Part shown: piece by piece, positions 162 to 34,427 of the stretch | Numbering within the stretch: the first letter of the stretch is position 1 | Layout: each line of letters begins with the position of its first letter | NCBI GenBank assembly: GCA_964199315.1 | Contig: OZ116708.1 | Span: 13,826,001-13,890,000, forward strand | DNA length: 64,000 nt | Direction of reading: 5' to 3' | Source: Orbicella franksi | Taxonomy: Eukaryota | Made by a program: the position numbers and the translations under genes | The notes under the pieces: generated by a model | The model's database searches: none | Seen by the model: the letters and a program-made list of their open reading frames with translations, nothing else | Told to the model about the DNA's origin: nothing

Positions 162-225
162 ATGCATCAGCTACATTTTCCCTTAATTTTCCCGCTGGTT
201 GTTATTTTTTCTGTTCCATCAACAG
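162..225 (+). CDS. RTK exon 1, signal peptide [21 protein letters not shown]
   Basis: Hydrophobic 21-mer after acceptor tttttcatag (ends 153). Donor ACAG|gtaag is phase 1, matching the TSP1 exon. Confidence 0.7.
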
Positions 226-6200: not shown

Positions 6201-8730
6201 TTTTTCTTTTAAAATGATTTCTTTTTAACCAAGTATCTTTTGGGATTTGAGGGACAAAAGAAACTTGAAAATTTTGTCCTGAAAAAGACATGCTAGAATA
6301 TTGATATATATCGAACGTGGCCTATTACCTGCCCGTTTTGTTGAACACGTCCATTTACACGAACAGGAAGGATTTTTTATCTCGTTCCATTTTCCTTTCG
6401 CCTTAGGGATGGGGGCTGCTCTGGCCGCGCTCGTTTGCTGAAGCATGATAAGTAAACTCTACAAACAAAGCCACCGATCTGGCGTAAATATGGCCACTAG
6501 CGTGACGTTTATTTGTCTCAGATAAAGTTATCAAAAATTACAAGTATTTGATGTTATCTTCAGCAAAGGTGGGGCACGAAAAACCGCCACAAGGACAATC
6601 GAAGTGTATGATATTTGGCTGGAGCTGGGGAGGCGGAGGGAAACTTGAAAATTAGCTCTGGAGATAGCGTTGCTGCTGAATGGTAAGGAGGCCGAAACTG
6701 ACATGCCAAGCAAACTAAATAGTAACCGCGATCCCGCCTACTAGTATCTGATTGGAGTCTCCTAGGTGATGTGCCTTTCCTTGCTCCACCCAAATAACTG
6801 ATAGACGTATTATAGTACCCAAGAAAATGTCTCGATATAAAATAACATTATATGTGCTGCATATAATGCTTCTTTTTGACCAAAGTATACAGAGCACGTT
6901 TTTAGTAAATGATTTTCATAATATGTCCTTGAATCTCCAAAGCCCTGATAAATTTGAGACTTGTCATATTGTCAGATGACGATCGACATAAACAATAACT
7001 TACCTCTCCAGAAACACTTTCTTGCTGTTCATGCATGCTCACATGCCAGTTCAGAATCTTAACAACGAACTAAATTACTGATAGATACTTTCACACCGTA
7101 TCAAATTGGGGGAAAAGCACAACGTTTTCGAAAAAACGGCACCTTCTTGAAGAATCCAATATGACGAACGGAGCTCCAAAGAGCGTGGTAAATGTATGCA
7201 TGCGTACATTTGCATGCACAAATGCGACACTAAGACGCCATACTGCGCATGAGTAATAAGTTCTACTTATCAATAACATTACGATGTGACTAAGTCCTTT
7301 GCTATTAAGCCATATGACATTGAAAAGGAGAGAGGGGAGGAAAATTTAACCTTCCCAACACTTTTGGTCATGGGTTATACAAGTCATGTAGTTCTATGTT
7401 TCTGTTTATTTAAGAGCAGCTTGCTCCAATGGTCACCTATACCTATGCAGGATAGAAATATTCGAAAAAAAGAAATTTTAAATCGTACTTGTTTGGTGCT
7501 TTCTTTTACCTTAAGTTTGTGAAACGTATTTGATTGTGAGGAAATTTTATTCAGTAGTTAAATAACTTGGTAATCTATATTCAATACATTAAGCTTCTTT
7601 AGATGAATTTTCTCCCATGCCTTTGTTTTAAATCTCTATAAAATATTTATATTCTAGGAGATTGGTCACGCTGGGGATCATGGGACAGGTGCTCTGTCAC
7701 ATGTGGCAGTGGATCTCAAATTCGACGCAGATCATGCACCAATCCTCCTCCACCAGATGGTGACTATGATTGCCGAGGAAACAAGACTCAGTCCCAGTCA
7801 TGCAACACAAACCGTTGTCCAGGTAACTGAGATGTCCTTTAAGCCTCAATCTTAATTGTTGATCTTAGGGTGCTTTTAATTTCCCTTGGGATGTCCTGGG
7901 TCAGGATCAATGGTCTACGATCACTTGGATTGTGGTGCATCAAAGCAACCCATGAATCCACTCTGAATAGAGATTCATTGGTTGCTTCAATGCACCACCA
8001 TCTGAGTGATTGGCAGTATTCAAACATTGATGCTAAACAGATCATCCCAAACGACCACATCCTTGTTTGTGTACACATCATTCTTCCCTTATTATTCAAT
8101 AGATCAGTCAGTGCTCCATGTGTAGACTTGGGTGACTGTGATTGCCAAGGACTTAGATATATGTTCCAATCGGCGAGAGAAACAGTTATCTGAGTATACG
8201 TAAGAGTAAGTAATGATTAGTGGCACCAAAATATGGGGCCTCGGTCTGGTTTACATCCATTCTTACTAGCCACGAAGGGATGGACATGAAGCAAAAGTAT
8301 CATCGTCATTAGAAAAATTATTATTGTTCCATACCTTTCATTGAGATTTTCTTTTCTTAAAAAAATATCATCGAACAGGAAGTAATCAACGTTTTCAATA
8401 CTGAGCAGTTTTCACCTTTATAGTTTCTTCAGATTTACAAATGTAAGTAGCTGTTTTCAAAAACAGTATTTAGAAGTCTACAACTTTGCTGAACAAAATT
8501 CCTTTATAATAGCACAAACTGTAGTTTAAATTTAGTTGAAAACTTCTACGCACTCTGGTCATGTGACCAATGGCATCAAAACCCCAAGGCTCTTCATAAA
8601 CTATATTTTTTGACAAATGTTTTCAGGTGATTTATGGTTCTCTTGGACTTTGTATCAACGATTAACAATGATATTATTGGACAAGGTTGAGCAAAATATT
8701 ATGATTGGTCAGTGGCAAGCAGATCATATC

Positions 8731-8763
<33 letters not shown>

Positions 8764-11700
8764 TGAGTTCAATAATTGTTTTATCATTCTATCACCAAGT
8801 TTGTTTTGATATTTAAATCACTCTCTGGCAGCTCAGGGAAGTCATCTGCTATTTTTCATACCAGAACATGTTTACAATTACCCATGAGCAGACCATTAAT
8901 TGAAGGTAGTTGCATGCATTTGCTGGTCATGTGGTGCGCTATCGGCCAATGAAAATGACGAAGAAATGCATCGAATGATAATTAAAGTTATTTGACATTC
9001 CAAGTTTTTCGGGTGCAAAAGATGCTGGGAAGGTTCTTATTATAATTATAATAGCAGAGTTCTGACCACCCAAAGGGCCGCCAAGCGGAGCCCCATACTC
9101 GTAAGAAAGGAAAGGAAACCCATGAATGGATTTTCTCGTGGTTATCAAGGCTAGGGACATGCAGCCTTGGTACATGGTGTCCTTCTTTGATATTGGACAT
9201 CCATGTTAGGGTCAACTGACACCTGTCAAAAATGTATCCGCTGACCATATCGTGGGCTTAAGTTTAGATCTCATTGAGGCACTTATTTTTTTAAGGTGAC
9301 CGCTGACCAAGTGCTGGTTTTCGATTGGATTGTGGGCTCATGTGGTGTAAACTTATTGAAATCAGGGCCGGGTTGTTTGAAAGCAGGTTAACGCTAACCC
9401 AGGATTAAAAGTTAACCGAAGTATAAATTTTTGTTGTATACGAATGTTTTTCACTGCTTTTGTTTTGTGTAGTTTGCGATTATTCAAACTCAAAACAGAA
9501 GGCCAAACGGTGTGCAGAAAACCTCACTGCAAAGTTAAAAACTCAAATCAAAATCCTTGCTTATCCTGGGTTAGCTTAATTGGGTTTTGAACAACCCGGC
9601 CCAGGAGCTCCACTTTTAGGCTTGCCTAAATCAGTATATAATTGTTTTGAATCGTGATTATTTAAATGTGAAATTATTCTGTCTGTTTTTATCTCCTATT
9701 AATTTTGTAAGTTGATGGTGGCTGGACCAAATGGAGCCTATGGAGTATCTGTACTAAGATAGTCAGTGGCATACAAACAAGGATTAGAGAATGTGCTAAT
9801 CCAGAGCCAGCACATGGTGGAAAGAAATGCAATGGAACCAGAGCAGTCGTGAGGGAGTGTAACAACATGTCCAGCTGCCATGAAGGTAGACATTAAGATT
9901 AGTAATTTACTGTGTGGATGGATTTAATACCATAAGGAAAGTAGCCTTGAAAATAGAAACTCAATATATATAATCAGTCAGACAAGCAAAACTATATAGA
10001 AAATGAATAAGATGAGATCTTTGTTGATATCACGGTTTGTTTATTACAGTAAGGGAAGATCGGTTTACAATATTTTAACTCTGTTTGAGAGTCATTGTAA
10101 AAAATTTATTGCTTCAACTCAAATTGTGTGTAAGAAGTGACTGTGTCATTGAAGTCTTGTTAATGAAATCCAAAACAGTGGACAGTTTATAAATCAAGGC
10201 TAATTACTAGGCATATAAACAAGTAATGATGTAACATGATGTAACCAAAGAAAAGATCGAACTCTTTAGACGCGTAGTTTCTCTGATTAATGCTAAACTT
10301 TAGGTTTTTGGTGCAGAAAGCCTCGATAAACACTAATGACGACACTGTGACCTCCAAGTTAGTATGAACAGTGCTAAAGATTTGCAAGTGAAAATGGTGA
10401 ATTATTGTGGTAATCAAGTAATTTGTATAAGCTAACTACTTTATTAAGGCGATGTCAATTCCTGAGGTGTAGCTTGTTCATGAAGCCTAAGAGCTAACAG
10501 ATGGCTTAGTTTGTATTGTATTGTATTTATTGTACAGACCGCTCAATAGCGCTTTAAAGGCTTCGTAAACATTTATTATTCTCACTGCATACATAATTAG
10601 CGCATCGCGGAAGTTGATTTAATCCCTCATATTCCACCATGCTTTTATGCCCCAGGTCAGGCATGATACTTTGCGGTCTCTTCGTTTAAATTACCGGGTT
10701 TTGCCTTCGGTATCTTTGTCATTTTGCCGGCGTTCCGGTGGAGGAAGGTCTTGTCACCCCACCCTCCTCCCCTGGTGCCGGTTGACAGTGTCACTCTCCT
10801 TTCTCGCTGCATACCTTAGCTGCCACAGTAGTCGCGGACTCCTCCCATAACTTAGTCTACCGCGATGTGGTAATGCGTATGCAGTGAGGTTATATCACTA
10901 TTATCATTAATGTTTTGATGTTATCATTTATTTCTTTCCATAACAAATACAAAATAATAATGTTAGAAATAATAACAAAGATTAAGCATTATTTCGATAT
11001 TTTTTTTTTTAACAAGGACTGACTTTATTACCATATTTAACAAGTTTTATTCCTGTAGTTTTCTTTTGATTGACAGCACATAAATTGTATTGGGAATAAA
11101 AGTTTAAGAGTGATACACCTTATGAATCTATAGGAAAAGTAGCAATAGGAAAAGTACCAAAAAGGTATCACAATACAACATTGAAGATACAAAATAATTA
11201 TGTCTTTCATAAACATGCCATTTGCTTGTGAAAGAATCGATACCTATTTTGTTTTCTTTTTACAATAAGCTTTCCTGTGTTATGTTTGTTTTTTAAAATT
11301 TGGGTAAAATGTGTAATTGATGGCTTATTGTCATTGCGTCTACAATCCCATAAATAAATTTTTCCTAAAAGAAAGGTATAATCTATTAGATCGATCTCCT
11401 CCCTCAAAACGTCAATGATGACATCACTCAATATAAGGTACATGCAACTACTTAATTGACTCAAAATGTTATAAATTACATAATTCAAAAAGGATTGTAA
11501 AATGGCACAATGAAACAAAAAAATGCAGAATTAGTCTCAAGAGTTTCATTACAAAATGTACAATTCAGGGATTGACGATTTATCCTATTTTACAAAGAAG
11601 ATTGTTTGTAAATGAAATGTAATTTAACACCTTATACTGAAAGGAACGTATCAGTCTAAGGCTCGGAGGCAACATGCAGTAGTAACAGTTTTGTTTTGGA

Positions 11701-13611: not shown

Positions 13612-13653
<42 letters not shown>

Positions 13654-19251: not shown

Positions 19252-19284
<33 letters not shown>

Positions 19285-22200
19285 GCATGAATACAGTAAC
19301 CATTAAGAGCATGATATAGTTTTATTTTGCTGATGCCAAGGAATTAAAATCTTACTCCCAAGAGAAATAATCGTGTGGTGCTTTTTGTTTAGGTTCATAA
19401 GCGGCCAATTTCCATTTCCCTGTGGGTGGCTACTTTGTATAGCTTTGACTGTAGTTCAAAACTACTCTTCTATATTGCCGGGCGCAGTACTTTCATGGAA
19501 TACAAACAAAAGTGTTAACCATGACAAGTGCATTCATACAATTGTTTTCATGGGTTATGTTGACTTTATTCATCAGTTATAACGAGTGAAAAACATCCAC
19601 CTCAATTCTTAATCTATATATTCAGTGGTTATGCGCTTTTGAATTCAGCTGAGTATATTTATTTGGTCTTCAAAAGGAACATAAAGGATTGGAAATTAAA
19701 TGTGCGTATGAAAACAGAAAATTCACTCCTAAATTCTCTTGCTTTTCAAGCTCTACCTAAACTGAATCCACTACTGAGGAATCAGTCTGTTGCGTTTAAC
19801 TCCACGCTTAATTTGACATGCATTGTGGGAGGTGATCGTCCACTTCAGATCAACTGGACCAAGAATGGTGTGGATCTTGGAAATAGAGACAATAACACAT
19901 ACACTGTTTTTCAAATGACTTTCGACCACGCAGGCTTGTATGGATGTACAGCCAAAAACTGGGCAGGAATGGCGTATGCTTTTTTTTGGATTGATGTGAC
20001 AGGTAAGGGACTCAGTTGTGAATCAGAGAATTAGAGCCATGGCTTTCTATTAATCACTGAACAGGATTAATAGAAATTTTGGTTCACGCATTCAAAATTG
20101 CACACTTTCCAATCAAGTGTCAATAGCTTTGCCACATTTTAACCTTTTGTTGGAAATTTAACACTTTAAATCTGTAACTGTACCAATCAAGACTGACTTT
20201 AATTGCCTACAAGTATTAAAAGGAACAATTCTCATTCCTTTGTATAAAGGAACCTTTTCTTTCTGCATGCATGTTAAGAGAATTACAACTAAAAGGATAA
20301 CTTTTTAATTAAATTATTTGTCAAATTATTGTGAAAAATGTGAAAACACCACGGAATTCTTATTTTATAATAAGACATAATTATTGATTTTGTTTCGAGG
20401 CTCTTTTGTTTTCCACAAAATTTTTAAGAAATTGTTCCTCGTACTTTCTGAACTCTACAGTGTGAGAAGGCAATGTTTTAGTTATAACCAATAACCTCCT
20501 TCTACGGGCGAGGTTGTATGCAAATATTGTGGACTTGCCCATATTGTTCAGTTTCCCTATTTAGCTAGGAAGGGGGCTAAAGTACCCGTACTAATTTCAA
20601 ATTTTTCTAACTTGAGTAACCTGAGGTTACGCGGTCAAACTTTGTGAAACTGAGGTGTGTTAATAGCTTGGTCATGTGATTTGATGCTTCTGCGGCAACA
20701 GGATGTTTTATTCAAATTTAAGTTCAAAACTATGTCTTAAGTGAGTTCGTGGATTAATTTTTATAAAGATGTTAGTTCTAAAATTCTCCAGGCTTGCTAA
20801 AAAAGCATACGCGAAATAGGGTTAATTACTGAATCCCTTGTTTGCACTAGCTGAGACCATCAGTTTAAAAGAATATGTTTGTAGGACTGTCATTAAGTTT
20901 TGAGTCACCTGAATCCACGTTCTTAATTCACACCTGTAACAAACTTTTTACTTTGAGAGTGAATTCTATCAGCATCAGGTAATTTCAACCACCACATCAA
21001 GGGCAATGCAATGAAGCGTACTCAGCCATAACAGGTATTATGGGTCATGGCCCCTAATAACAGCCTTGGTTTGGTCGAAAGTCTCTCCTCAGATTTATGT
21101 TTCTCCAAGAAACAAGTCTGTTCCCGAAGGCCACCCAGAGAACTTTAGCTGCAAAGCCACAGGTGTTCCCAAGCCAACATTCTCCTGGAAATTTAATGAT
21201 GGGTACCTCCCTTCAGGCATCAATCAAACCAGTCTTAGTGAAGGATCATTCCTGGAGTTGCCTTACACTACAAAACGTATGGAAGGTATCTACAAGTGTA
21301 CAGCAGAAAACAAAGCTAACACAACAACCTCTTCTGCGTATCTTCATGTTTTTGGTAAGCAGAACAAAATCTACCTTATTCAATATCATTTATTGCAGGT
21401 ACAAAATTATGTGTCTCGGACAGTTTCAAAAATACCGTCCGAAGAAATTTAGGCGTGAACGAAATTTGAACCTATGACCTCTAAAGAGTCAGTTCAGTGG
21501 TCTATCAACTGAGCTGTTACAATACCAACTGGACTTGTGAGTGCATATGTGTAATACATGAAGTTGAACCTTGCTGTCTTGAACTTGTTCAAATCATCTT
21601 AAATTCAAAGCCTTTTCCTGTAAGTATGCTATTTCAGTCTTATATATGTACATGTACTTTGGGCTGTCTCAACAACCCCCTCGCTAAATTGAACTGTTTT
21701 TCATTCCCCTAACCAGTGCAAGATAGCAGGGCTTAACGTTATATATACACTAATGACATCCATACCCATCATGTTTGCCACAGCTAGGTCAAGAAATGGT
21801 CGGTGAAAAAAAAACTTTAAGGTCAGGAAATTGTATTTTGAGTCAGGGAAAATTGACATTTTGAAGAAAAGTCAGGGAAAATTTAAATAATTTAACATAG
21901 GTGATTTAACACCATTGAGGACTGGACGAAACGTTTGGGGTCATTGTGATCTCTGTTATATTTTCCTTAATGAAGAAGGAAAATTTGCTGAATGAACGGG
22001 CAGAAAGGACAGCTGTAAGTTGAGGCTAGACGGCTGCTACTAGATCTGACATTCTGTATTTATTTGGTTAGGGAAATTTGATTTTTAACAGGGTAAAGTC
22101 AGGAAAAAATCAGGGAATTTTGAAAAGTTCGACCTGTGACGACCATGATCCCAGGGGCAAATAATAATTGTTGTAGTACATGTATAGCCATATGTACTGC

Positions 22201-25200
22201 TATAATGGCTATGTTGTGCTGATTAGCATTTTTGAATCAATTCGCACGCTTCAAATTCCTAGGATTTCAGGGTTTCTTGTCAATTAATTTCAGAGGGATG
22301 AAATTCTAACTTGGTGAAGTCCAACAGAGAACAGTTACAATAGGTTTTTTTTTTTATAAAACGTTTTTTTCACCTCTTTATCTTATATGTACTAACTATA
22401 CTAGTACTGCACTTGCACTATAAAATAATTATCTGAATATCTAGTCAGATGTTATCAGATGTTAATATCATTGGCACGATACTTTCAATAGCTTGATGCC
22501 AACTCAGTAAACTTACGCATATGTGGGATGTGATGTCTTATTCTCCTAATTTGCATTTTTCAACGTCTCCTGTATTTTTGATATTCACTTAATAACTGTA
22601 GAATTCGTATTGCTATGCTTAAAGTGCTCATGCACTATATACACAACATCATTTCCAAATATAAACCCAAATAGTTTTGAAAAGCAACATTCTGAAGTAA
22701 AAAAAATTAGCCCCCTCTCCCTCCACCCATATATTCTAAGCTCTTCCACATTTAAGAGCACCAAAGAGTCTTTGAAACAAATATGCCCATGAATTATCCT
22801 AATTTGACTGAGTGTTTCTTTTACTTATTGCTTGAATGTGTTTGTCTTTAAAGAAAAACCCGCTGCTGAGGTAAGCCCAAAGCCTTATCCAAAACTGACA
22901 GTAGGAGATGAGCTTAGATTAACTTGTCAGATCAATAAAGCGACTGTGGCAATCAAATGGAAGAAAAACGATGATGAAGTAATTCCAAGAGCACAGATTG
23001 ATACACAATTAGATGATAAATTGAGCAAACTTTTTATTGTGGAAGTTGTGGAAGGTGATAGTGGTGAATATTTATGTGAAGCACGTAACAGACCAGGTAT
23101 TGTGGCTCGCTCTACTGTAAAGATCGATGTCAAGGGTAAGGACGATTGTTATTGATCTTGCCCTTAGAAATACTTGTAGTGAAAAAAACAACAACAACAA
23201 CAACAACAACAACAAAACTGGCAAGTATTCTTTCATTTGCACTCTTAGGGCTTAATTGCTGACTAACTGCTGCAAAAAAATTCAGCTGGTTACAATATTA
23301 ACAGTACCATTTCTTTATTAACGATCGGACTCCTGATAGGTTTTTCCATCCTTAATTTTCAATAATAATAGTGATAAAAATTAGAAAATTACAAACTATA
23401 GGATGATGGCAGACAAGTTTACAACACTACAAAATCACATATAGTAATTGTATAAGCCCATAATATAAATGTAATCAGCTGGCAATTACCCTGTGTTGCA
23501 TTATCGTTTATCTATTAACCCTCATACGTACAAGGGGGGTGGATTACAGCTCCCCATAAGGTTTTTTCAAAGTTTTGAAAAGACGATTTATTCAAAGACG
23601 CTGAAAATTTCATTCTCTGCGGAAATTTTGATATGTCAATTGCGGGACCATTATTTGACGTTGCCTTGGCCATCATCAAACTTCACGTAGGCCTGGCCAA
23701 AAATCAACTTTTTTGAGATAATTCTGTAGTATTTTTTTTCCAATTTTCTTCATTTAATTGCATAAATTCATGAATTTGTACATTTCATAAGTATGGTGGC
23801 CTGATTTTGTGTTAATTTCCTTTATTTCTTGACTTTTTAAGAAAATAGTAAAATCCAAGATGGTGGGTCCAAGATGGCGGGGCAAATGACGTCATGATGA
23901 ATAAAAATGGTATCATCTTGTCGAGGAAGCTCAGGGCTATCTAATCAATGTAAATTTATTTTGCTATGCCTAAACAGAACGAAAACCCAGAGGGGGGTTT
24001 CATTCACCCCCCTTCTACCACGGTGGGGGTATGAGTTAGCTTGTACGTCCGAGGTTTACAGGCACAACACTTTCAAAGTACCTTATCAGTATATGTAACA
24101 GCTGGACTAACTGCATACGATTTGAAAATATCTGGATAATGGTGCCTGGGTCATCCAGACACTTCCACATTTAGGGTCTTCCTGGATTAGCACGATCAGC
24201 TTTTGAAGAATCGAGACCAGGTTGAGAGGGGCTTGTGTAATGTCATGAACCTGGTCAGGGCTTAAACTTGGACTGTTTGGTCAATGTCCATTGCACTAAC
24301 CATAAGGCGCTGTTCCTTCCAATAGATTAACAATACTAACATAGAAAACTGTTAAAATGAAGTTTTGTATAGTAATACTAAAGGCTCCCTTCTCAGCTTT
24401 TATTGCCAGGCAGGCTCTGGAGTGGTATTATATTGTGGGGCCTGTACTTGGTTGCATTGTCGTATTTGCTGTAGGCTGGTGCATTTGCAAGTACCGAAGA
24501 GCAGGTAAAAACAATAACTGAATAAGAGAGTTCATTATGTTGATTTGCCATACAACCATTTATGGATTCATGAACAATTCAGTTTTAGTGTCATGTAAAA
24601 CACTTTACTTAAGTACTTAGCCCAAGGAATAAAGTGTTGCCTGCTAATAAATATCGCTACACCAAATAGCAGAAATAGCAATTTTTAGAGCATGGGTGTT
24701 CTTCCTAACAAATGTCTTTGGCAACACGATAGTTGTTGTTATAGTTAAACGCACCACCTCTTTTTAGGGTAGGTAGGCAGGTAGGTAGGTAGATAGGCAG
24801 TTAGGTAAAGTCTGCATATGAGCAAGGCCAGAGCTTGTCCTGGTTTCTGTAGCATGAAGCATGCAACTAGGAGTATTTCTAACTCCCCCCTGGATGGGAT
24901 GCTAGTCCATTGCAGCGTTACCACCGGTTAAGTGTCTTGCCTAAGAACACAACACATTGTCTCCGGCCAGGACTCGAACCCGGACCGCTCGATCCGGAGA
25001 TGAGCACACTAACCATGAGGCCACCACGCCTCTACATCTGTCTTAGGGTATATAATATTATTAGCTCTGGCATTTATTCAACCTGGTTTTATTTTGTTTG
25101 TTTCTTCTGTTTCTTTCTTTCGTACATATGCATCTTTCGTTATCTTTCATTGGGTAAATACAGCTGTGGCCGAACTGTAAGTCGATGCCTTATTGTTTTA

Positions 25201-28200
25201 TTTTACTAAAAGTGTGTAGTTACACTTTCTACTTTTTACATCTTCACTGTTTTTGCGTATTCACCAATAACAGCATATGGATAACATTTATCTTCAAAGG
25301 GGCACTATCACGAGAATGGTTTAAAAAAGACAAAGTTTAATCCAAAAGATAGTGTCTTGTTAGAAATTTCTATTCTATTACACTGAAGCTTTCAAAGGGC
25401 TGTACACATTATAATAAATTCTGAGACTGAAATTCTACCCTAAGTTTGTGTTTTAGAAAAGTCTCAAAAACCTAATCATAATGATTACCTTTCCTTTTCA
25501 CCAAAAATCTTCTTAGTTTTTCAATTAGGGTGTTATGATGGGATTGTTTCGTGCATGAGTGAAGATATTACCATAACTTTAAGACTGCATATTTCTCTGA
25601 AAATGTAGCAAAATTATCATGAAATGCCCCTTTAATCCATCCCATATTTCCAAACATAAGCATATGCATGTATGAACGTGTTTCAAAGTACATTTTAGAT
25701 TTAATCTGCAGGTGTACATGCACTACTGGGAAATATGGCTCCTATTCATCTTTTTTTTTTATAAGCTTTAAAGTTAATTAACCTTTGTAAGAACTTCAAT
25801 ATAACTAAATGAAGGACAATAATCTATGTGACGGGGTTTCTTCAAGGAGGATCTGTGTAACTAAAAAATTAATCTTCCTTTAAACTTTTTATTGTAATTT
25901 TTTGCAACGATTGATAGCTTCAATTTATTCAATGAGGGTGTTTTTGTGTTATTTCCCTGCAGTCATAAAATTCAGTCAGTTCATCTATACAATTTTAATT
26001 AGGGCCTATTTTCAGTATATTTGACTGAGGGAAGACTTACAGTAAGCAACATCCCCGCATGAACTACTCTTTGGAGGAATGCATATATTAATGGTACAAA
26101 CTGAGTTGTTACTGCAGGGAATAGATTTGAAATAAATATGATGAATAACATTTGATTGTAAAAAAAACTATTGGTGGCTATCTAGATATCAACAATAGGG
26201 TAGTCTATGGAATCCCTTTAAATGTGTCACAGTTTGTTTTAATTTATCACAAAATCACTGACTTAACATGATCGACTGTAATAATGTTTGATTAGTTAAC
26301 CCTGCCCTGTGACAATGAAGTTTTGAGTTAAATTGTTTAGACCCGATCCAGAGAAAGCAGTTGAGATGCAGTTCCAGAACCCTGAAGCGGATGAATGGGA
26401 GATTGCAGTTGACCTTTTACAACTTCAAGAGGTCATTGGCAAGGGGGCATTTGGAGCAGTCTGGAAAGCACTTTTAAATAAACCCGATGGAAAACCTGAA
26501 AAGCGGACCGTTGCTGCAAAATGCTTTACACGTAAGATCATGTAACAGTAACAAGATAAACTTAGATACAGGGCAACCCGGCTTTATATCACGGTCACCT
26601 CCTTATGTCCTGGCAAAAATGCCCATACATTTTATTACAAGAAAAGTCCATTAATGCAGGCATCTCATTAATACGGCTAACGGCCTCAATCTGAAATCTC
26701 GAACGAAATATATATGTTACTTGCTGACCTTGAGGTCTGTATTGGGAAAACTGTGCCCTAGCTCTTGAGTATGGCTCGAGGCCGCAGGTTCACAGCCATA
26801 CTCAAGAAAATCATCTAGCCGGAACCATTGAGATTGCAGGATAAACTTAAAAAAAACACACAACCTCGATATGATTATGTGATACTGGTCAGCAGATACC
26901 TTGTTTTGACAGCTGTCATATGACCATCACATTGCTGTCCATCGCCATGCTGCGCACCATCGTGCTGAACAGTGTTGGAGCAAGCATGTAGCCTGGTTTG
27001 ACGCCGTTGGTTACTGGGAGGAAGTTTGTTTGTTAGCGACCGATGTGAGGGCAGCCAATCTTGGACATGATCTTCCACAGCCCTTCTCTGCTGACTTTGT
27101 CGAAGGCCTTAGTCAGGTTCTTGAAGGTGGTGAAGAGATCTCGTAGTTGCTCCTTGCACTTTTCCTCAACCTGCGCAGAAACCACACTGACTCTCAGGAA
27201 GGAGGCCCCACTCTAGATGGTGTAGCTGGCAGTTCAGCAGCGCACGGGCCAAGACCTTGCTGGCAATGGACAGGAGGGAGATTCTGTGGTAGTTGCTGCA
27301 GGGCAGGCGGTTCTCCTTGCGTTTGTAGATGTGGACGATTGTGGCATCCCTAAAGTTCTGAGGGAGCTTTTTTTTTTCCCACATGGGCTGGAAGAGGGTG
27401 ATACCACCTGCATTGTACACCTCAGCAGGGATGGCGTCCGATCCTGGGGTTTTCCTAGTGGACATTTGCTTGATGGCTTTCTCATCTGCCTTAACGCTGA
27501 GTCAAGCATCTTGCATGTTGTCAAGCTTGTTGCGAATGGGTCTGCAGATGCTGGTGAATGTGGCCTGTTTATGGGCAGGAGGGGTGGTGATTCTGGCATG
27601 TCTGAAAAGGTCGACGTTTTTCTTCCAACAGTTCCTGGTCATCTGTGCTGAAGACATGAAGGATCATCGCAGTTATATGCACAACTTAAGCAGCTGTGAA
27701 ATTGAAGAAAAAAAAATCAGGCTTGAATGGGATTGGAACCCATGATCTCTGCAATACTTGTGCAGTGCTCTAACAATGGCCTGAGATATCAAGCCAACTG
27801 GGAGATGGTAAGAATGTAAGTGAATATATGAAAGATAATATATAGAACTTCAGAGAAAGATATGAGGACATGAAGGACCATCGCAGTTATATACAACTGT
27901 GAAATTAAAGCCTGAAAAAGAAATCAGTCTTGAATGATCATATATAATCATATATGATCTTTCATGTATTCACTTGCGTGATCTATATTGCCAGCACACG
28001 GGGTAAGTTATCCAATTTCTACCAAAATTTTAAAAAGTGTGTCAATATTACTGCCTATACCAAATAAACAGGACCAAATCAAGAAAGGTAGCTGTTTGGG
28101 AAAATTGCGTGGTAAATACCAACGTTTTGGTTTTTAATTTGCTTACTTTGTTGGGTAGAAAATTCTCAATACTTCAAATGGCCTAAATACAGGAAATCAA

Positions 28201-31200
28201 ACAAGAATACATTCAAATATTTTTACTTCATTGTATTAATTAGAAAGTGAAGTCTCTGTGTGTGCCAGGTAGTTTTAATCCAGATTTTAGCATGAAGCAA
28301 CCAGATGTATACATGAGACACCAGTCCGTTGCAGGGTTACCTCCCAGAATTTAACTTGCAGGTAACCATTCGTACACTTGGGTGGAGAGAGGCACTGTTA
28401 GAACAAACTGCCTACCCCAAGAACATAATGCGATGACCCACTGGGACAGGGCTGGAACACCGGAGTCGATCCATACTCCAGCTCTTCCTACACTGTATTA
28501 TGTATGCATGCATACTCATAACTAAGGAATTTTGGAAGCTTAAGTATTCACCATTGCAACTACTAAACATTTGAATTTCTTGGTTTCCTGCGACCACACA
28601 AACAAAATGAAGTTAGAGTGCTATTCTCCGAACCGTTGAAATCGTTTCTATTTTTTTTTTAATAGCATATACTGTATAGCTACTATTTATTTGTGGTTTA
28701 CTGAAAAACTTCGATAGAAATAATAATATTAGAGCTGTCCGACGTTTCGATATTGCTGACATCATTATCAAGGTAAAAGTGACAGTTTTAACGCGGTGTG
28801 AATATAAATTGGTGGAACAAGAATAATAGACATTTTCTTGTGATCTCACATAAATAGTTTTGAGTAGTAGAGTCAGTTTGCGCGTTCAAAGCTGGCTTGA
28901 GATCTTGAAAAGTTAACATTTCGTGGATAAGACAATCGAATTTGTTTTGTTGCCTTTTTTGAATAATGAAACGTTAATTGAAAACGGTTTTGAGATCCTT
29001 TGCGTGTCTGAAGATGTGCTTTCGAATTGACAAATTCAGAAAATTCCAATTGACAAATTCAATAATTGTACCTTATTATATTGTGTTCTTACATTGTAGC
29101 CACTTCTGGGGAAGAAGGTAGGAGATCTCTGATGAGAGAAATTGAACTGGGAAAACTTCTTGCAGAAAAACCTCAGCCAAACATTGTTGAGTTTATTGGC
29201 TGTGTTACAACCCAAGGTGAAAGTTGCAATTATTTTGCTTGGCAAGTGAACTGTGGAAAATAATTATTTCATGTATGACTTGAGATGAAATGTAATATAG
29301 GTTTATGTAGAATGAATGATGTGAACTGCAGAAATGCAAATGAAATTAAAATGTGATCATCTCAGTTATTGCAATTTAAGCCAAAGCCTGCTTAACCCCT
29401 GGGAGAAAATGAAACACTGTCAACATTGGCAAAGTTCCTCATTTTCAAACAAAACAAAACGAGTGTCTAACAAGACAACAAATTGACATGTCAGAGTCCC
29501 AGATCTGGACCACTCAATCCTATGTCCAATATAGTAATTATTAGGTTGCCACGTCATTGAAATTTCCCAAAAATATAGAATGCCTCAAAAGGTAGGTTGA
29601 CTGTAGATTATTATTCTTGATCATGCTCTCATGCTCTTAGTTCATCCAATGATGATCATGGAGTACTTGGCATGTGGTGACCTGCTGGGTTATCTGAGGA
29701 AAAGCCGTGGAATTCATGATAAGTATCATCTTGGACAGGGGAGTGTTCCAGAGCTGGAAATATATGACCTAGTGCTGTTTGCCAAACAAATTGCTGCTGG
29801 TATGGTTTTTCTTGGATCCAGAGGGGTAAGTAAACATCTCACAGAAATCAGACTGCAACAGAATTCCACAGGCTAAGTCCACATTTGGACAGACTCTAAA
29901 TCTGCCACTGGTAACTACAGTGTAGTATGTTGGTGTACTATGATTTTCAAAGCATATATTCTTTGATAAACTTCCTACGGTACATTGTGTAAGGTTAATA
30001 AATAGACTTCTTGTTGCTGTGCGACTGTTTAGTGACTTATTAAGGTGATGTCAGCGTGCGATAAGAACAAAAAAGTAGCAAAAAAGAAAAAAAAACAAAC
30101 GTTATCACGTTTCCATAACATGAAGGGTCTAGGAGTATGCCCAATCCTCCCCTGGGATTTTTTTTCTTTTTTTTTGGGGGGGGGGGGGAATTAGTTTTAT
30201 TATGTTTGCTTACACTTTACAATACTTATGCTGCAACGTTACACTAATACCATACAATGAAAAGCTACATACACTACATACAAAAAAACACAGCTACCCT
30301 GTCTTAGCTACCCTGTAAATTCGACTCAAAATAAAGTTATGTATGTACTGCAGTTATGCAATAGGGCTCTCTACATTACAGTAGAAGGTTTGAACCCAAC
30401 GCTTTATGCTATCACCAAAGTTAAACTTGAACAACCGGCCACTCAACTATGTCAAAGGCTTTCGTAAACTCCAGCTGGAGCAAAATGCCAGGAACGTTCT
30501 GTAATTCAGTTTGCTCAAGAATCTCATTTATCTATCTAATATTTTGACCAATGAATCGATCTTTCATGAAACCGGATTGGTCACAATGTATTAAAGTTGG
30601 TATTACTTTTTTAATTGTCGATGCTTTAGCTTTTGAAGCAATTTTATAATTCACTTTTCATACGGTGATTGGGTGCCAGTTTGACAGCTCATGATCAAGG
30701 AAGTTGGAGTCGTCTTTCGGAATCAGTGTAATAACTCGATCCTTTCCTTTGAGAAATAGACATTTCCCCGTGGAAGTAAGCTGCGTTGAGAATTGCAAGA
30801 AAATCTGGCGTAAGAAGCTCAAGAACTGAACTTTAAACCGCCAACATAAAATCTGCCGGTACTCATTTTATAGACCTGGGTGGGAGGGGCATTGCGAAAA
30901 TAAAGTGTGTCAGCCAAAGGCACTTCCAAATATTCCCCGACCACTTAATCTAGAGTTTAGCATAGTAACCCACTTTTGGTGATATGTATATTGAAAATAT
31001 TTAGTACTTTCTCACTGCTCAAGAATTGTAAGGTTTCCCAGGTGCTTTCAATCAACTTTTCAACATGTTGATTGCAGCTTTTGAATTCTTTTAAGCGGTT
31101 AAGTCTTCTCCTATCCCTGGATTGGAATATAACACTGACTTCCTCTAAAGATTTAGTTTAAATTGAAGGACCCAGGTTTCAAAAACCAGGGAAAGAGTCT

Positions 31201-34200
31201 AGACCTTTTTTCCAAAGGGTAAAAACTAAATGGTGCTTTTTGACAACTGTTTTATTCAAAATGTAAAATAATATATATTTGTAGATAATCCATCGTGACC
31301 TGGCAGCTCGTAATGTTCTTCTTGATGACAACTTTGTTTGCAAAGTTACCGACTTTGGTCTGGCTTATCAAGATTTTAAGTATGGACATGGAAATGCTAA
31401 AAAGGTATATCTATTTATAATTTTACAAAGCCATTACACAACTAACACAATAACTGGTGCGGAGGGAAACAGTTTTAACTGTTTAAAAGAACTTAAAAGG
31501 TGGGTCACAACTGTTACCAGGGTTTTTCGCATTTTTTTTGCTGAATCAATTACGGCCACTCTTTTTTGTTGATGTTGTGATTAGCATTTTAAAATAGGTA
31601 TTTTTGCCAAGTTTAAAAGTGGCAGGGGTTTCAGAGCCACTTTGTCTTTTTTGGACGTTAATTGGCTAATAGAGATTTTCAACAAAACATACTGAGTGTT
31701 CACTAACAAGCTTTACACTGTTGTATTTACAGGGCTGTATGCCAATCAAATGGACTGCACCTCAGATTCTGTCAGGAAATGTTGCTGAGCTCTCAACCCA
31801 AAGTGATGTGTATGTACAATATAGATTTTTCCTGCTGCCCTCGTCAGTTGAGGCTCTGTGATACAAGTCCATTTTTCTTGCAACTCGCCTCGCAATTTTG
31901 TTGCGCAGTTGCGAAACAACTGAAGTTCTAAGAGACGTTGCCTAGTGTAGCATTTTCTGACATGAACAACGTAGCGAAAATCGAGCTTAATTCTACCTTG
32001 TGAAACGGTTACTGCAACAAAACCGTTGCGAGACATGTTCATTTCCAGGGGTTATACGCTAAGGAATTTCTCGGCGAGAGACAAGTTGTGAGAAATATTA
32101 GGTAGTGTAATAGCACATTTAATCTCATTATTTTCATCAAAACGAAAAGATAAAGCAAGTAACTACTTCCAGAAATACTGCTTGCCATTGCTGCAACAAA
32201 TTCTGGCTGGATTTGGTAGACAGAGCAGATGAGATAATCGACTACCATTATAATAAGCATGAAAGCTTATTCTCCAGTCGCACAAAGACTCATGGTCAAA
32301 TAATGACATTTGCGTTAATTGTTTAGGTCTAAAATTGCAAATTAGTCGTCCAGCGATTTTAATCTGGGGTTTACTATGAGCTTCATAAATTTGCCAGAAT
32401 TTTGAAGCACGAGAAAAACAACCATAATTTTATTATAATTTCACCTTGTATTCTTCGATCTGTAGAATTCTAGTATACACTCTCACTTGATCTTTAAAAC
32501 AGTAACATGATTAGTCTATTGTGTAACTTCTGTTCTTGTCTATAGTACACTAGTATATTCAGCTTTGATCTATATTACTAATTTACAGGTGGTCTTATGG
32601 AATTGTCTTGTACGAGATCTTCACCATCGGTAAGTTTAAAAATTTGTTGAATATCGACAGCAATAAGAATAATAAAGACAAAAGGAAGCTGAAACTAAAA
32701 TGGTAAACACCTAGTTAGCAGCTCACAGCACACTTACATTGAGGGATAGATTGCTCTAAGCCGAAAGAGTGTTTTTCTTTAGACTAACTCATAACTGAGT
32801 TAAAACACACCTGTATTCCTTGACAGGAGGAATTCCATACCCAGGATGGTCAGAAGGAAGAGTGGTTCAAGCAGTCCTGAATGGATATCAAATGCCAAAG
32901 CCTGACCACATTGACGACCAATTGTAAATTTATTAATCACTATTTAAGTGTTTACCTTAAGTTATTAATTGTAAGCGCGTTCTTAACGTGCCAACGATAA
33001 CTTTTCTATTATTATTATTGTGATATCTGGTTTTCGCTGACTATTGGCCGATATGGAACACGATATGCACACTTATTGTTTATTCTTTATTTCTGGCTTA
33101 AAATATCTAAAATTCTTCATTTCCTCCTCGTTTTCTTTAAGCAGAAGTCAACTTGAGTGCGCCATGGACCTAATTGACCATTTTCTTACAGTCTAAATGC
33201 AATGTGAACAATTATTGCCTCAATATTCAAAGGATGTTAAAAAGTCTGACCATTTTTAACAGATATTCTGGTGTCTTATAAATGCCTGCAAGTTTTTGGC
33301 AATCATTTTATGCAGCACAAATTGTTCACCTTAACCAAAGTTCAGTTGAAATTACTTAAGGGAAGGTATTACTTTTACGTAATTCTTCTCTCAGGCGTTT
33401 TGAAAATTATTATTTAAAAAAAAAAAAAACATGTAGTAAGATCAGACTAGTAATGGCTATGAATTTCAACGTGTCCATTTTTAGGTATGATGTAATGACC
33501 AGGTGCTGGAACTTAAACCCAGACTTCCGTCTTCCTTTTGAAAACCTACGAAAAAGAATGGATACATACCTTCGTGAGGAGGTTTGTGATAATGAGCCAA
33601 TCAATAACCTAGGTTAACAGAATTCTATGAACTTGGCTCTAAAACACGATGATTGTAATTGCAGAAATATTCTCTCACTAAAAAAAAAGCCGTTTTCAAA
33701 ATCCGATAGGAAATCGAGAAATTTCCGTTTGTAGTGGACAAAACCTTGTACCAGAATAATATCAGATATTTTACAGTCCTTTTTTACATTTTCTTAAAGT
33801 TAAAGATGTAAATGGTTGCTTGAAATAACACAGGTAACAAATTCCTAAGGGAACTCGAGAAAATAAATTTCAAAGTTCAGAGAAAATGCGCAAACACAGG
33901 TAAAATTTCATCATCAATTTCATTTCACCAGTACTTTCAAGTGTTGAAAATTAGTTTTCGACTACTGGTGTTAATAGAAATGATTTTTGTTAGAAGATAT
34001 CTAAAACAGTGGCACAGAAGTTTGCAAAACGATGTAAATAATCACGGTACAAAGTTTCTGTCCACTTGCCACTCGAACTTGTGGTGTATTTTTATCTGTT
34101 AGAACTTCCTTTTTAATCTCTTAGAACTATCATTTTAGCTCTGTTAGTTTTGTAAAGTGCTTAGAACAGAACGCTATATAAATATCTATTACTGCTACTA

Positions 34201-34427
34201 TTACTAATACTATTACTATTTTCTCTTAATGCTTAAAACCTCTCGTTGTACTCATTTCTTATAATTATTCCTTCCAGACATACACGGAATTGGTCCACAT
34301 GGGAAAATATGATAGCGTGAAATACTCTAAGGTTGAAGATCTTGGAGCTCAGGATGAACCACCAAGTGAGCAAGTCAAGACGAGCACCACTGGAAAGAAA
34401 TTGGGAAAATGGTCGAGTGTCCGTTAA
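162..34427 (+). CDS. Receptor tyrosine kinase, 22 coding exons, ~1262 aa: SP-TSP1-TSP1-SRCR-SRCR-Ig x6-TM-tyrosine kinase-Tyr-motif tail
   Basis: Hand-spliced join 162-225,7658-7822,9712-9885,13859-14134,14779-15102,16827-17087,18344-18622,18967-19209,19751-20002,21082-21354,22854-23135,24397-24504,25164-25176,26341-26531,29100-29216,29641-29825,31285-31404,31733-31809,32589-32629,32827-32923,33485-33581,34278-34427. All introns are GT-AG, the phases chain, and the total is 3789 nt with no internal stop. Motifs: [21 protein letters not shown]. Confidence 0.9.
1428..1912 (+). repeat. Interspersed non-coding repeat family, copy A (MITE-free)
   Basis: Collinear with 9050-9640 and with the reverse complement of 58860-59585 (gatattggatatccatgttatggtcaactg..acctgtcaaaataaggtatccg). 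Confidence 0.8.
2435..2494. repeat. 22-bp tandem repeat x2.7
   Basis: ttaaatgacatatttcgtatat repeated; starts at the ttaa ending a gagccaccttaa element terminus. Confidence 0.85.
3860..4510 (+). repeat. Degenerate tandem array of 4 units (146-209 bp spacing)
   Basis: Core ttcatgtgga(a)tgt..gggaacaaaccag at 3873, 4076, 4222 and 4431. Confidence 0.7.
5345..6095 (+). repeat. Interspersed repeat, second copy at ~33680-34090
   Basis: Shared blocks ggaaatcgag..aaccttgtaccagaataa; gggaactcgag..tttcaaagttcagagaaa..aaacacaggtaaaatttca..agtactttcaagtgtt; gtccacttg..actcgaactt. Confidence 0.75.
7658..7822 (+). CDS. RTK exon, thrombospondin type-1 repeat 1
   Basis: [55 protein letters not shown]: WxxWxxW, CSVTCG and RxR motifs; phase 1-1. 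Confidence 0.93.
9050..9640 (+). repeat. Same repeat family, copy B (MITE-containing)
   Basis: ccgccaagcggagcccc start and cttgcctaaat end; MITE at the CAG site. Confidence 0.8.
9366..9601. mobile_element. PIF/Harbinger-type MITE, TIR GGCCGGGTTGTT, 3-bp TSD CAG
   Basis: CAG|ggccgggttgtttgaaagc...ttttgaacaacccggcc|CAG; the empty site aatCAGgagctc is seen at 1872-1874. Confidence 0.85.
9712..9885 (+). CDS. RTK exon, thrombospondin type-1 repeat 2
   Basis: [58 protein letters not shown]; phase 1-1. Confidence 0.92.
11150..12590 (-). mobile_element. L1/Tx1-clade LINE, degraded 3' half of ORF2
   Basis: Minus strand shows QFADDT (RT catalytic motif, 12491-12508), [20 protein letters not shown] and [11 protein letters not shown], with frameshifts. 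Confidence 0.85.
13615..13650. repeat. (TA)n microsatellite
   Basis: Direct reading. Confidence 0.95.
13859..14134 (+). CDS. RTK exon, divergent/truncated SRCR domain 1
   Basis: [33 protein letters not shown]...LTCEAMGY; SRCR N-terminal pattern; tttatcag acceptor, AAAG|gtagt donor, phase 1-1. Confidence 0.85.
14779..15102 (+). CDS. RTK exon, SRCR domain 2
   Basis: [60 protein letters not shown]: canonical SRCR; phase 1-1. Confidence 0.93.
15180..15980. repeat. Interspersed repeat ending in a ~112-bp imperfect palindrome
   Basis: cacttaatgactggcccc (15864) / ggggccagtcattaagtg (ends 15973), with paired gggaaacagt..ttttgtttcc arms. Confidence 0.6.
16827..17087 (+). CDS. RTK exon, Ig-like domain 1
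   Basis: [24 protein letters not shown] (Ig C-W-DxGxYxC); phase 1-1. Confidence 0.92.
18344..18622 (+). CDS. RTK exon, Ig-like domain 2
   Basis: [28 protein letters not shown]; phase 1-1. Confidence 0.92.
18967..19209 (+). CDS. RTK exon, Ig-like domain 3
   Basis: [30 protein letters not shown]; phase 1-1. Confidence 0.92.
19217..19283. repeat. (ATAATG)n microsatellite
   Basis: Direct reading; source of the spurious poly-Ile ORF. Confidence 0.95.
19751..20002 (+). CDS. RTK exon, Ig-like domain 4
   Basis: [32 protein letters not shown]; phase 1-1. Confidence 0.92.
21082..21354 (+). CDS. RTK exon, Ig-like domain 5
   Basis: [29 protein letters not shown]; donor TTTG|gtaag. The only phase-1-compatible acceptor nearby (gtcgaaag) is weak, so the 5' edge is less certain. 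Confidence 0.85.
21770..22147. mobile_element. Probable hAT-like MITE
   Basis: Imperfect TIR catgtttgccacag / ctgtgacgaccatg with internal gtcagggaaa repeats; TSD unclear. Confidence 0.45.
22854..23135 (+). CDS. RTK exon, Ig-like domain 6
   Basis: [26 protein letters not shown]; phase 1-1. Confidence 0.92.
23188..23214. repeat. (CAA)n microsatellite
   Basis: Direct reading. Confidence 0.95.
23519..24055. mobile_element. piggyBac-type MITE
   Basis: TTAA|ccctcatacgtacaag...cttgtacgtccgaggt|ttac: imperfect TIR with a degenerate TTAA TSD. Confidence 0.65.
24397..24504 (+). CDS. RTK exon, transmembrane helix
   Basis: [36 protein letters not shown]: hydrophobic span followed by a basic stop-transfer; acceptor cccttctcag gives phase 1. 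Confidence 0.87.
24768..25032 (-). mobile_element. tRNA-derived SINE (Deu/Nin-like body, internally deleted) with (CTAC)n tail
   Basis: Minus-strand head gaggcgtggTGGCCTCATGGttag (A box) and GGTTCGAGTCC (B box); GTAG repeats at 24768-24808 form the tail. Confidence 0.8.
25164..25176 (+). CDS. RTK 13-nt juxtamembrane microexon
   Basis: tacag|CTGTGGCCGAACT|gtaagt converts phase 1 to the phase 2 required by the acceptor at 26340. Confidence 0.6.
25298..25631. mobile_element. Kolobok-type (TTAA TSD, AG..CT ends) MITE
   Basis: tcaa|aggggcactatcacga...tcatgaaatgcccct|ttaa. Confidence 0.6.
26341..26531 (+). CDS. RTK exon, kinase subdomains I-II
   Basis: [26 protein letters not shown]; donor C|gtaag. 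Confidence 0.92.
26895..27640 (-). mobile_element. RTE-clade LINE RT fragment
   Basis: [51 protein letters not shown]; [13 protein letters not shown]; frameshifted. Confidence 0.9.
27645..27975 (-). mobile_element. Second tRNA-derived SINE-like family, partly tandem
   Basis: gaagacatgaaggatcatcgcagttata..tgtgaaatt occurs twice; degenerate tRNA head ggaacccatgatctctgc..gtgcagtgctcta; related fragment at ~21450-21535. Confidence 0.65.
28285..28490 (-). mobile_element. Degenerate copy of the same SINE family
   Basis: Shares agcatgaagcaac..agtcc.ttgcagggttac..gggtggagagaggcactgt..ccaagaaca with the 24.8-kb copy; further fragments at ~24170-24310 and ~30115-30155. Confidence 0.65.
29100..29216 (+). 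CDS. RTK exon, kinase subdomains III-IV
   Basis: [22 protein letters not shown] (alphaC Glu present); phase 1-1. Confidence 0.92.
29641..29825 (+). CDS. RTK exon, kinase subdomains V-VIa with short insert
   Basis: [39 protein letters not shown]. Confidence 0.93.
30385..30860 (-). mobile_element. L1/Tx1-clade LINE RT fragment (N-terminal RT subdomains)
   Basis: Minus strand shows [54 protein letters not shown], with stops. Confidence 0.85.
31285..31404 (+). CDS. RTK exon, catalytic loop and DFG
   Basis: [40 protein letters not shown] (not in the ORF track; read directly). Confidence 0.95.
31733..31809 (+). CDS. RTK exon, kinase subdomain VIII
   Basis: [25 protein letters not shown](V); phase 0-2. 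Confidence 0.9.
32589..32629 (+). CDS. RTK exon, kinase subdomain IX
   Basis: (V)[13 protein letters not shown](G); phase 2-1. Confidence 0.92.
32827..32923 (+). CDS. RTK exon, kinase subdomain X
   Basis: [32 protein letters not shown]; phase 1-2. Confidence 0.92.
33485..33581 (+). CDS. RTK exon, kinase subdomain XI
   Basis: (L)[32 protein letters not shown]; phase 2-0. Confidence 0.92.
33680..34090 (+). repeat. Second copy of the 5.3-6.1 kb repeat (internally deleted)
   Basis: Shares the blocks listed for 5345-6095. Confidence 0.75.
34278..34427 (+). CDS. RTK last coding exon, cytoplasmic tail
   Basis: cttccag acceptor, phase 0; [49 protein letters not shown]-stop. Confidence 0.8.
   Translation, partial: TYTELVHMGKYDSVKYSKVEDLGAQDEPPSEQVKTSTTGKKLGKWSSVR

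Follow-up and report, generated by a model that had tools for sequence, protein, structure and literature searches.

A multi-copy coral receptor tyrosine kinase gene with thrombospondin, scavenger-receptor and immunoglobulin modules in its ectodomain

Receptor tyrosine kinases (RTKs) whose ectodomains were put together by shuffling are familiar from non-bilaterian groups, with lineage-specific examples in sponges, choanoflagellates and Hydra, and the principle of joining a kinase to unrelated extracellular modules is shared by MuSK and ROR (immunoglobulin (Ig) plus Frizzled, with or without Kringle) and Tie (Ig, EGF and FN3). Exon-shuffled receptors built on a kinase module often form lineage-specific families (overview in PMC8662651). 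Here, we analysed a 64,000-nt stretch of the genome of the coral Orbicella franksi (contig 11, 13,826,001-13,890,000, of a 497-Mb assembly; hereafter, the window) and describe a gene that follows the same principle, with thrombospondin type-1 repeats (TSRs; TSP1a and TSP1b), domains of the scavenger receptor cysteine-rich (SRCR) type and Ig domains preceding a tyrosine kinase.

FGFR, the PDGFR-KIT-CSF1R group, VEGFR and RET resemble the coral gene in their type I topology, their juxtamembrane run of Ig domains and a tyrosine kinase bearing HRDLAARN and DFG, but have neither TSR nor SRCR modules. FGFR has three Ig domains where the coral gene has six; PDGFR and VEGFR carry a long kinase insert, whereas the insert of the coral gene, between LRKSRG and the LVLFAKQ helix, is ~15-20 residues long. 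Nor does the gene fall within these classes as usually delimited: FGFRs by an ectodomain limited to two or three Ig domains and an acid box, PDGFRs and VEGFRs by five or seven Ig domains, as against six Ig domains after four non-Ig modules here. The claim of an initial annotation made from the letters of the window, that no standard vertebrate RTK class has a TSP1, SRCR and Ig ectodomain, is borne out by the domain content.

The extracellular domain types themselves have been described in cnidarians. TSR and SRCR proteins are linked to symbiont uptake and microbial recognition in this phylum (PMC5446238, PMC5119243), and the WxxWxxW and CSVTCG motifs of TSRs have been discussed for symbiont uptake (PMC5446238). 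Reported partners of cnidarian SRCR domains are CUB, trypsin, Ig, MAM and similar domains (PMC5119243), and the word ‘kinase’ is absent from the TSR paper (PMC5446238); unlike the coral gene, the described proteins of both kinds lack a kinase. Full-text literature searches, together with a reading of papers on cnidarian scavenger receptors and TSR proteins, on the SRCR superfamily and on the holozoan tyrosine kinome, returned no RTK with TSR, SRCR and Ig modules and no SRCR- or TSR-linked tyrosine kinase; they covered the literature and not architecture databases. Models of such genes probably exist already, unremarked, in public annotations.

The gene lies on the plus strand and comprises 21 exons, with its ATG at 162 and its stop codon at 34425-34427 of the window. 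Stop-free frames between these positions encode, in order, a hydrophobic N-terminus, a pair of TSP1 repeats, a pair of SRCR domains, six Ig domains, a membrane-spanning segment and nine pieces of kinase or tail. A splice-site scan joined them into a single phase-consistent chain in which all ectodomain introns are in phase 1, and the joined product (1254 aa after exon-start corrections) contains no internal stop. Pfam, applied exon by exon, recovered every domain where the initial annotation had placed it, confirming the TSP1 x2, SRCR x2, Ig x6 content of the ectodomain, and matched PK_Tyr_Ser-Thr on four of the kinase exons. Because of these domains, the open 21-exon frame, the RNA joints, the order kept in paralogs and in a divergent relative, and the constraint acting on both halves of the protein, we read the locus as one RTK gene. 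The most probable account, in our judgement, is a genuine, transcribed single-pass RTK of a coral multigene family, its ectodomain assembled from phase-1 TSR, SRCR and Ig modules, which would be activated by ligand.

The ectodomain contains 36 cysteines and 26 N-glycosylation sequons. TSP1a has the six cysteines of a TSR and reads WSRWGSW and CSVTCG, so the motifs attributed to it beforehand are indeed there; TSP1b passes the Pfam profile but has five cysteines and CTKIVSG where CSVTCG is expected. Both SRCR exons score above the PF00530 cut-off of 26.1 bits, and best scores across the six Ig exons range from 36 to 58 bits. Residues 877-895 form the one strong hydrophobic segment of the product (mean 2.46 in a 19-residue window, the highest of the protein), consistent with a single transmembrane helix. 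The hydrophobic N-terminal exon has a homolog upstream of one paralog (locus C), with the same donor and phase (MRQLLAVLMVFLHGFSVSSAG), on which basis we call it a putative signal peptide. No more TSP1 or SRCR exons were found in the 20 kb upstream of the gene. That region holds a single open frame with Phage_integrase and DUF3504 matches (contig 11, 13,819,627-13,821,033, ~5 kb before the window); at 469 aa, and with a QRICH1 match, it looks like a gene or element derived from a tyrosine recombinase (Crypton-like).

RNA contigs from three coral RNA-seq runs carrying two organism labels were aligned to window positions 13700-19300. About 0.2 of the words of this interval occur in coral RNA-seq contigs, near the exon share of the stretch, and the aligned contigs cross GT..AG joints at 14134>14779, 15102>16827, 17087>18344 and 18622>18967, thereby splicing SRCR1, SRCR2, Ig1, Ig2 and Ig3 in succession. 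A single 800-nt contig (run X2, record 7) covers SRCR1, SRCR2 and Ig1, placing SRCR and Ig exons in one transcript. Depth was zero in non-repeat intron bins, making genomic DNA in the libraries unlikely. The RNA also corrected two exon starts: that of SRCR1 moved from 13883 to 13859, which adds FPLRFQSG, the usual start of an SRCR domain, and that of Ig1 from 16773 to 16827. Of the words of the TSP1a exon, polyA RNA contigs from these studies contained a fraction of 0.92 in two runs and of 0.42 in X2 and X6, the runs carrying the SRCR-Ig contig. A raw-read run (X23) had 2 reads only on the stretch. Within the SRCR2-Ig1 intron (window 15196-16691) and at 17253-17439, RNA-contig depth reached ~1870 with loose ends on both sides; this signal most likely stems from transcribed repeats elsewhere, outside this mRNA.

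Might the model wrongly join two genes, one for a secreted protein with TSR (or TSR-SRCR) modules and another for an Ig-kinase receptor? Such a split could fall where the joints from the signal peptide through TSP1a and TSP1b to SRCR1 lie outside read coverage, and in this copy a ~4 kb intron separates TSP1b from SRCR1. Yet contigs running up to the SRCR1 acceptor extend beyond it by 52-82 letters on the upstream side, with AG just before the acceptor as at the end of the TSP1b exon, and in paralogs A, B and F the gap between TSP1b and SRCR1 is a mere ~105-110 nt, leaving no room for a gene boundary. All phases match, the order is kept in a divergent taxon (below), and the contig spanning SRCR1-SRCR2-Ig1 contradicts, for the SRCR-Ig junction, the separation of TSP1/SRCR exons from Ig-kinase exons that the initial annotation had named as grounds for dropping its model. 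We therefore consider two genes highly improbable. The single-gene reading would link the signal peptide to TSP1a, TSP1b and SRCR1, and Ig3 to the kinase, as suggested by phase and by collinearity in five loci and the divergent relative.

Searching the coral's own genome with kinase exon 15 returned nine loci with a closely related exon (79-100% identity), seven on contig 11 and two on contig 9, and matches to SRCR2, TSP1a, TSP1b and Ig5 coincided with these nine loci, their order and strand being as expected (Table 1). Exon-by-exon mapping covered loci A, B, C and F, while D, E, G and H were placed by exon matches only. The four mapped paralogs all run TSP1a-TSP1b-SRCR1-SRCR2-Ig1 to Ig6-transmembrane-kinase, with 74-78% ectodomain and 84-90% kinase identity to the window gene; the figures for A, ~125 kb upstream, are 76% and 90%. 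Locus C has one more TSP1-like exon, placed after its signal-peptide exon and before TSP1a (contig 11, ~21,840,177-21,840,326), and this paralog may carry three TSRs. More distant matches to kinase exon 15 (40-57% identity) occur in tandem by dozens at ~20.3-25.4 Mb of contig 7, ~26.9-29.8 Mb of contig 3 and ~4.16-4.36 Mb of contig 9, which suggests that related tyrosine-kinase genes form very large tandem arrays on these contigs. SRCR exons cluster on contig 7 at 22.52-22.56 and 24.88-24.90 Mb.

The family extends to other taxa. When compared with public assemblies at E <= 1e-20, the SRCR2 exon matched 247 short open frames of exon type, with identities of 59-92% among the best 120; generic SRCR exons in the own genome match it at <=45%. 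One relative, R1, on a 1.77-Mb contig (ENA ERZ25071797), has all 20 coding exons that follow the signal peptide in the same order, on one strand and in a span of 33 kb; its identity to the window gene is 53% in the ectodomain and 73% in the kinase. Its best match in the own genome reaches only 77%, which indicates a different taxon rather than a copy of any local paralog. The family further reaches Acropora, as judged from an Acropora millepora partial protein at NCBI (P0236; SRCR1-SRCR2, named ‘scavenger receptor cysteine-rich type 1 protein M130-like’) with 55-63% identity. In a second assembly (ENA ERZ25067864, 8170-10357 of the stretch read), a decayed copy is cut short in TSP1a and interrupted by an in-frame stop in TSP1b; its SRCR2 is intact and closely resembles P0236, and no Ig exon occurs within 10 kb. 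A search of protein representatives with the SRCR2 exon recovered no ortholog: its ranking sums SRCR repeats, and the top 150 were multi-SRCR proteins of 559-4170 aa, none with a tyrosine-kinase motif.

Table 1 Exons of the receptor gene (window coordinates) and the nine related loci of the own genome (contig coordinates). For the loci, ‘no hit’ refers to single-exon genome searches, which score best candidates only, and is not proof of absence. dN/dS, ratio of non-synonymous to synonymous substitution rates, with bootstrap 95% interval.
Feature	Position	Strand	Content	Evidence and remarks
Exon 1	162..225	+	Start codon, putative signal peptide	Phase-1 donor CAG|GTAAGT; homolog upstream of paralog C
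Exon 2	7658..7822	+	TSP1 repeat a, six Cys	Pfam TSP_1 53.5 bits; paralog identity 58-64%; dN/dS 0.80 (0.43-1.37)
Exon 3	9712..9885	+	TSP1 repeat b	Pfam TSP_1 30.5 bits; 84-89% identity to paralogs; seven own-genome copies
Exon 4	13859..14134	+	SRCR domain 1, divergent	Pfam SRCR 34.7 bits; RNA contigs from 13857
Exon 5	14779..15102	+	SRCR domain 2, canonical	Pfam SRCR 79.9 bits; RNA joints at both ends
Exon 6	16827..17087	+	Ig domain 1	Pfam Ig_3 36.7 bits; RNA joint 15102>16827 in three runs
Exon 7	18344..18622	+	Ig domain 2	Pfam I-set 46.1 bits; RNA joints 17087>18344, 18622>18967
Exon 8	18967..19209	+	Ig domain 3, ~12-17 aa shorter than in paralogs	Pfam Ig_3 42.9 bits; whole exon in RNA contigs; dN/dS 0.83 (0.59-1.28)
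Exon 9	19751..20002	+	Ig domain 4	Pfam Ig_3 44.2 bits; collinear in paralogs and R1
Exon 10	21082..21354	+	Ig domain 5	Pfam Ig_3 58 bits; eight own-genome copies
Exon 11	22854..23135	+	Ig domain 6	Pfam I-set 46.7 bits; present in paralogs and R1
Exon 12	24397..24504	+	Transmembrane helix, stop-transfer KYRRA	Donor kept in all five copies
Exon 13	26352..26531	+	Juxtamembrane, glycine loop GKGAFG, VAAK lysine	PK_Tyr_Ser-Thr; acceptor 26352, 26358 or 26361
Exon 14	29100..29216	+	Kinase helix alpha-C	Identity 76-87% to paralogs, 79% to R1
Exon 15	29641..29825	+	Hinge, short kinase insert, C-lobe start	PK_Tyr_Ser-Thr 31 bits; nine close own-genome copies
Exon 16	31285..31404	+	Catalytic loop, activation-loop tyrosines	PK_Tyr_Ser-Thr 42.1 bits; 97-100% identity to paralogs
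Exon 17	31733..31809	+	P+1 loop PIKWTAPQ	APE>APQ in this copy only
Exon 18	32589..32629	+	Kinase piece	100% identity in all paralogs and R1
Exon 19	32827..32923	+	C-lobe, GGIPYPG	
Exon 20	33485..33581	+	Kinase domain end	PK_Tyr_Ser-Thr profile positions 234-257
Exon 21	34278..34427	+	C-terminal tail, tyrosines in YTEL, YDSV, VKYSKV, then stop	VKYSKVED kept in paralogs and R1
This gene	Contig 11, 13.83-13.86 Mb	+	TSP1a, TSP1b, SRCR2, Ig5, kinase exon	
Locus A	Contig 11, 13.689-13.709 Mb	-	TSP1a, TSP1b, SRCR2, Ig5, kinase exon	
Locus B	Contig 11, 21.80-21.815 Mb	+	TSP1a, TSP1b, SRCR2, Ig5, kinase exon	
Locus C	Contig 11, 21.84-21.876 Mb	+	TSP1a, TSP1b, SRCR2, Ig5, kinase exon	
Locus F	Contig 11, 19.75-19.775 Mb	+	TSP1a, TSP1b, SRCR2, Ig5, kinase exon	
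Locus D	Contig 11, 19.413-19.4385 Mb	+	SRCR2, Ig5, kinase exon	No hit for TSP1a, TSP1b
Locus E	Contig 11, 19.278-19.294 Mb	+	TSP1a, Ig5, kinase exon	No hit for TSP1b, SRCR2
Locus G	Contig 9, 10.106-10.123 Mb	+	TSP1b, SRCR2, Ig5, kinase exon	No hit for TSP1a
Locus H	Contig 9, 10.1475-10.168 Mb	+	TSP1b, SRCR2, kinase exon	No hit for TSP1a, Ig5

The catalytic motifs of an RTK are all present in the kinase: the glycine loop, the VAxK lysine, the alpha-C glutamate, HRDLAARN and DFG. Two tyrosines lie in the activation loop, and the VKYSKV motif of the tail is kept in R1. The acceptor of exon 13 is ambiguous by 9 nt, affecting <=3 residues; among the candidate sites, only the AG before 26361 is common to all five copies. 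A hidden juxtamembrane exon was considered as well, a TTTAG being kept in five copies, but was dropped: this site is out of phase, and in-phase AGs follow <=20 nt on, the one before 26361 being kept in all five.

Searched against solved structures, exon 15 matched CSF1R, KIT and PDGFR-beta best, then TrkB, RET and FGFR1, while exons 13 and 19 fell closest to the Src family and exon 16 to EGFR/Eph/Met; exon 14 had no match in this search. The exon matches do not single out FGFR. The affinities of exon 15 speak for an alternative in which the gene product serves development or tissue organisation as the receptor of an endogenous ligand or matrix component, or serves adhesion through its Ig domains, in the manner of FGFR, VEGFR, PDGFR or PTK7. 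A six-Ig stalk on a tyrosine kinase is the layout of a growth-factor receptor, the EIFTIGGIPYPG motif resembles that of the FGFR and RET group, and the whole architecture has been kept at the ectodomain divergence seen in R1. Low variation speaks for this alternative too: the RNA runs, under their two organism labels, differ from the reference at <=5 positions in ~1.4 kb of exons SRCR1-Ig3. Conserved developmental RTKs are, however, usually single-copy, as opposed to ~nine copies with differing N-terminal content here, and the best matches of the other kinase exons to Src-family or Eph/Met kinases give no indication of orthology to a growth-factor class. We regard this alternative as possible though rather doubtful.

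Evolutionary rates were estimated by pairwise Nei-Gojobori comparison of the five local copies. With dN/dS at 0.19 (0.12-0.28) in the kinase core (exons 14-18) and 0.25-0.45 in most ectodomain exons, both halves of the protein are under constraint. TSP1a and Ig3 evolve much faster than the remaining ectodomain modules (Table 1), TSP1a being called the fastest ectodomain exon, and SRCR1 is also low in identity. The juxtamembrane exon, at 0.95, has a very low dS and a wide interval. Uneven dS between exons (0.12-0.50) suggests gene conversion to some extent.

Fast N-terminal exons would suit the pattern-recognition reading proposed in the initial annotation: a dedicated receptor that would recognise surface molecules of Symbiodiniaceae or bacteria through its TSR and SRCR modules, its kinase signalling for uptake or defence. 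This proposal agrees with the ties of TSR and SRCR proteins in cnidarians to the uptake of symbionts and the recognition of microbes (PMC5446238, PMC5119243), with the WxxWxxW and CSVTCG retained by TSP1a, and with the family's multiple copies, its gain and loss of members and its decayed copy in another taxon. On the other hand, dN/dS does not exceed 1, and neither cnidarian repertoire paper (PMC5446238, PMC5119243) mentions a kinase-linked form; we deem this proposal unlikely. A hypervariable allorecognition gene was also entertained and set aside on the few differences between RNA runs and reference, a comparison confined to exons SRCR1-Ig3.

Two features set the window gene apart from its relatives. 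Its P+1/APE motif departs from PxxW-T/M-APE, with glutamine in place of the glutamate that A, B, C, F and R1 all keep in the alignment, and its Ig3 alone is shortened, paralog A retaining the full-length domain. These peculiarities raise the option that this copy is decaying or signalling-impaired, a pseudokinase or decoy among functional paralogs, as does the broken family member in another assembly with its stop in TSP1b and no Ig exons nearby. The conserved glutamate of APE has a structural rather than a catalytic part, and its loss is not known to abolish catalysis. With 21 of 21 exons open, the other catalytic motifs intact and the gene expressed and correctly spliced in several libraries, we think impairment improbable.

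Several observations weigh against reading the locus as a functional, ligand-activated RTK. The RNA joints cover SRCR1 to Ig3 alone, and no read connects SRCR1 with the exons before it (signal peptide, TSP1) or runs from Ig3 into the kinase. The exon-level structure matches are inconsistent and do not place the kinase in any one class. The dN/dS intervals of TSP1a and Ig3 include 1 as well as values below it, such that relaxed constraint fits as well as positive selection. Lastly, APQ and the short Ig3 may mark this copy as a weakened or diverging member of its family.

If the locus is a ligand-activated RTK, as we favour, its membrane-distal TSR, SRCR and Ig modules would bind an extracellular ligand, with specificity probably set by the fastest-changing exons, TSP1a and Ig3. 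By analogy with RTKs generally, ligand binding would gather receptors, the kinase would phosphorylate tyrosines of the activation loop and tail, and the phosphorylated tyrosines would recruit phosphotyrosine-binding adaptors. The data suit an endogenous ligand, or a part in adhesion, just as well as they suit a sensor role. Since copy number, N-terminal variation and the decayed copy resemble recognition-receptor families more than single-copy developmental receptors, we lean, on these genomic patterns, towards variable ligands (microbes, symbionts or other non-self) over one conserved developmental ligand. A bolder version—a germline family of diversifying non-self receptors in reef corals, with TSR and SRCR modules wired to a kinase and different paralogs reading different symbiont, microbial or allogeneic surfaces through TSP1a, SRCR1 and Ig3—we put forward as a speculative idea that we consider unlikely.

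Some further features of the window, which is AT-rich (GC content about 0.32-0.44), are recorded here. Intron 1 contains a ~430-nt repeat (1430-1900) that occurs at least 40 times across the chromosomes, its copies being 75-80% identical. In the intron after exon 13, a patch of higher GC content (0.43; 26900-27750) has open frames of 99-141 aa that overlap one another on the two strands; the longest gave no Pfam match. Downstream of the gene, three tandem intronless open frames of 576 aa each, spaced by ~5.4 kb, lie on the plus strand at 44150-45880, 49514-51244 and 54895-56625, each with a weak NHL-repeat match, and a 618-aa open frame without a Pfam match occupies 40641-42497 on the minus strand.

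Were the ligand endogenous, the gene would add one more lineage-specific RTK to the many found outside bilaterians. Either way, the family offers a clean example of phase-1 exon shuffling into a receptor, followed by lineage expansion. TSR and SRCR proteins have been implicated in the uptake and tolerance of algal symbionts in forms that, as described, have no signalling domain; the family reported here is a concrete candidate for the way in which modules of this type might signal into the cell.

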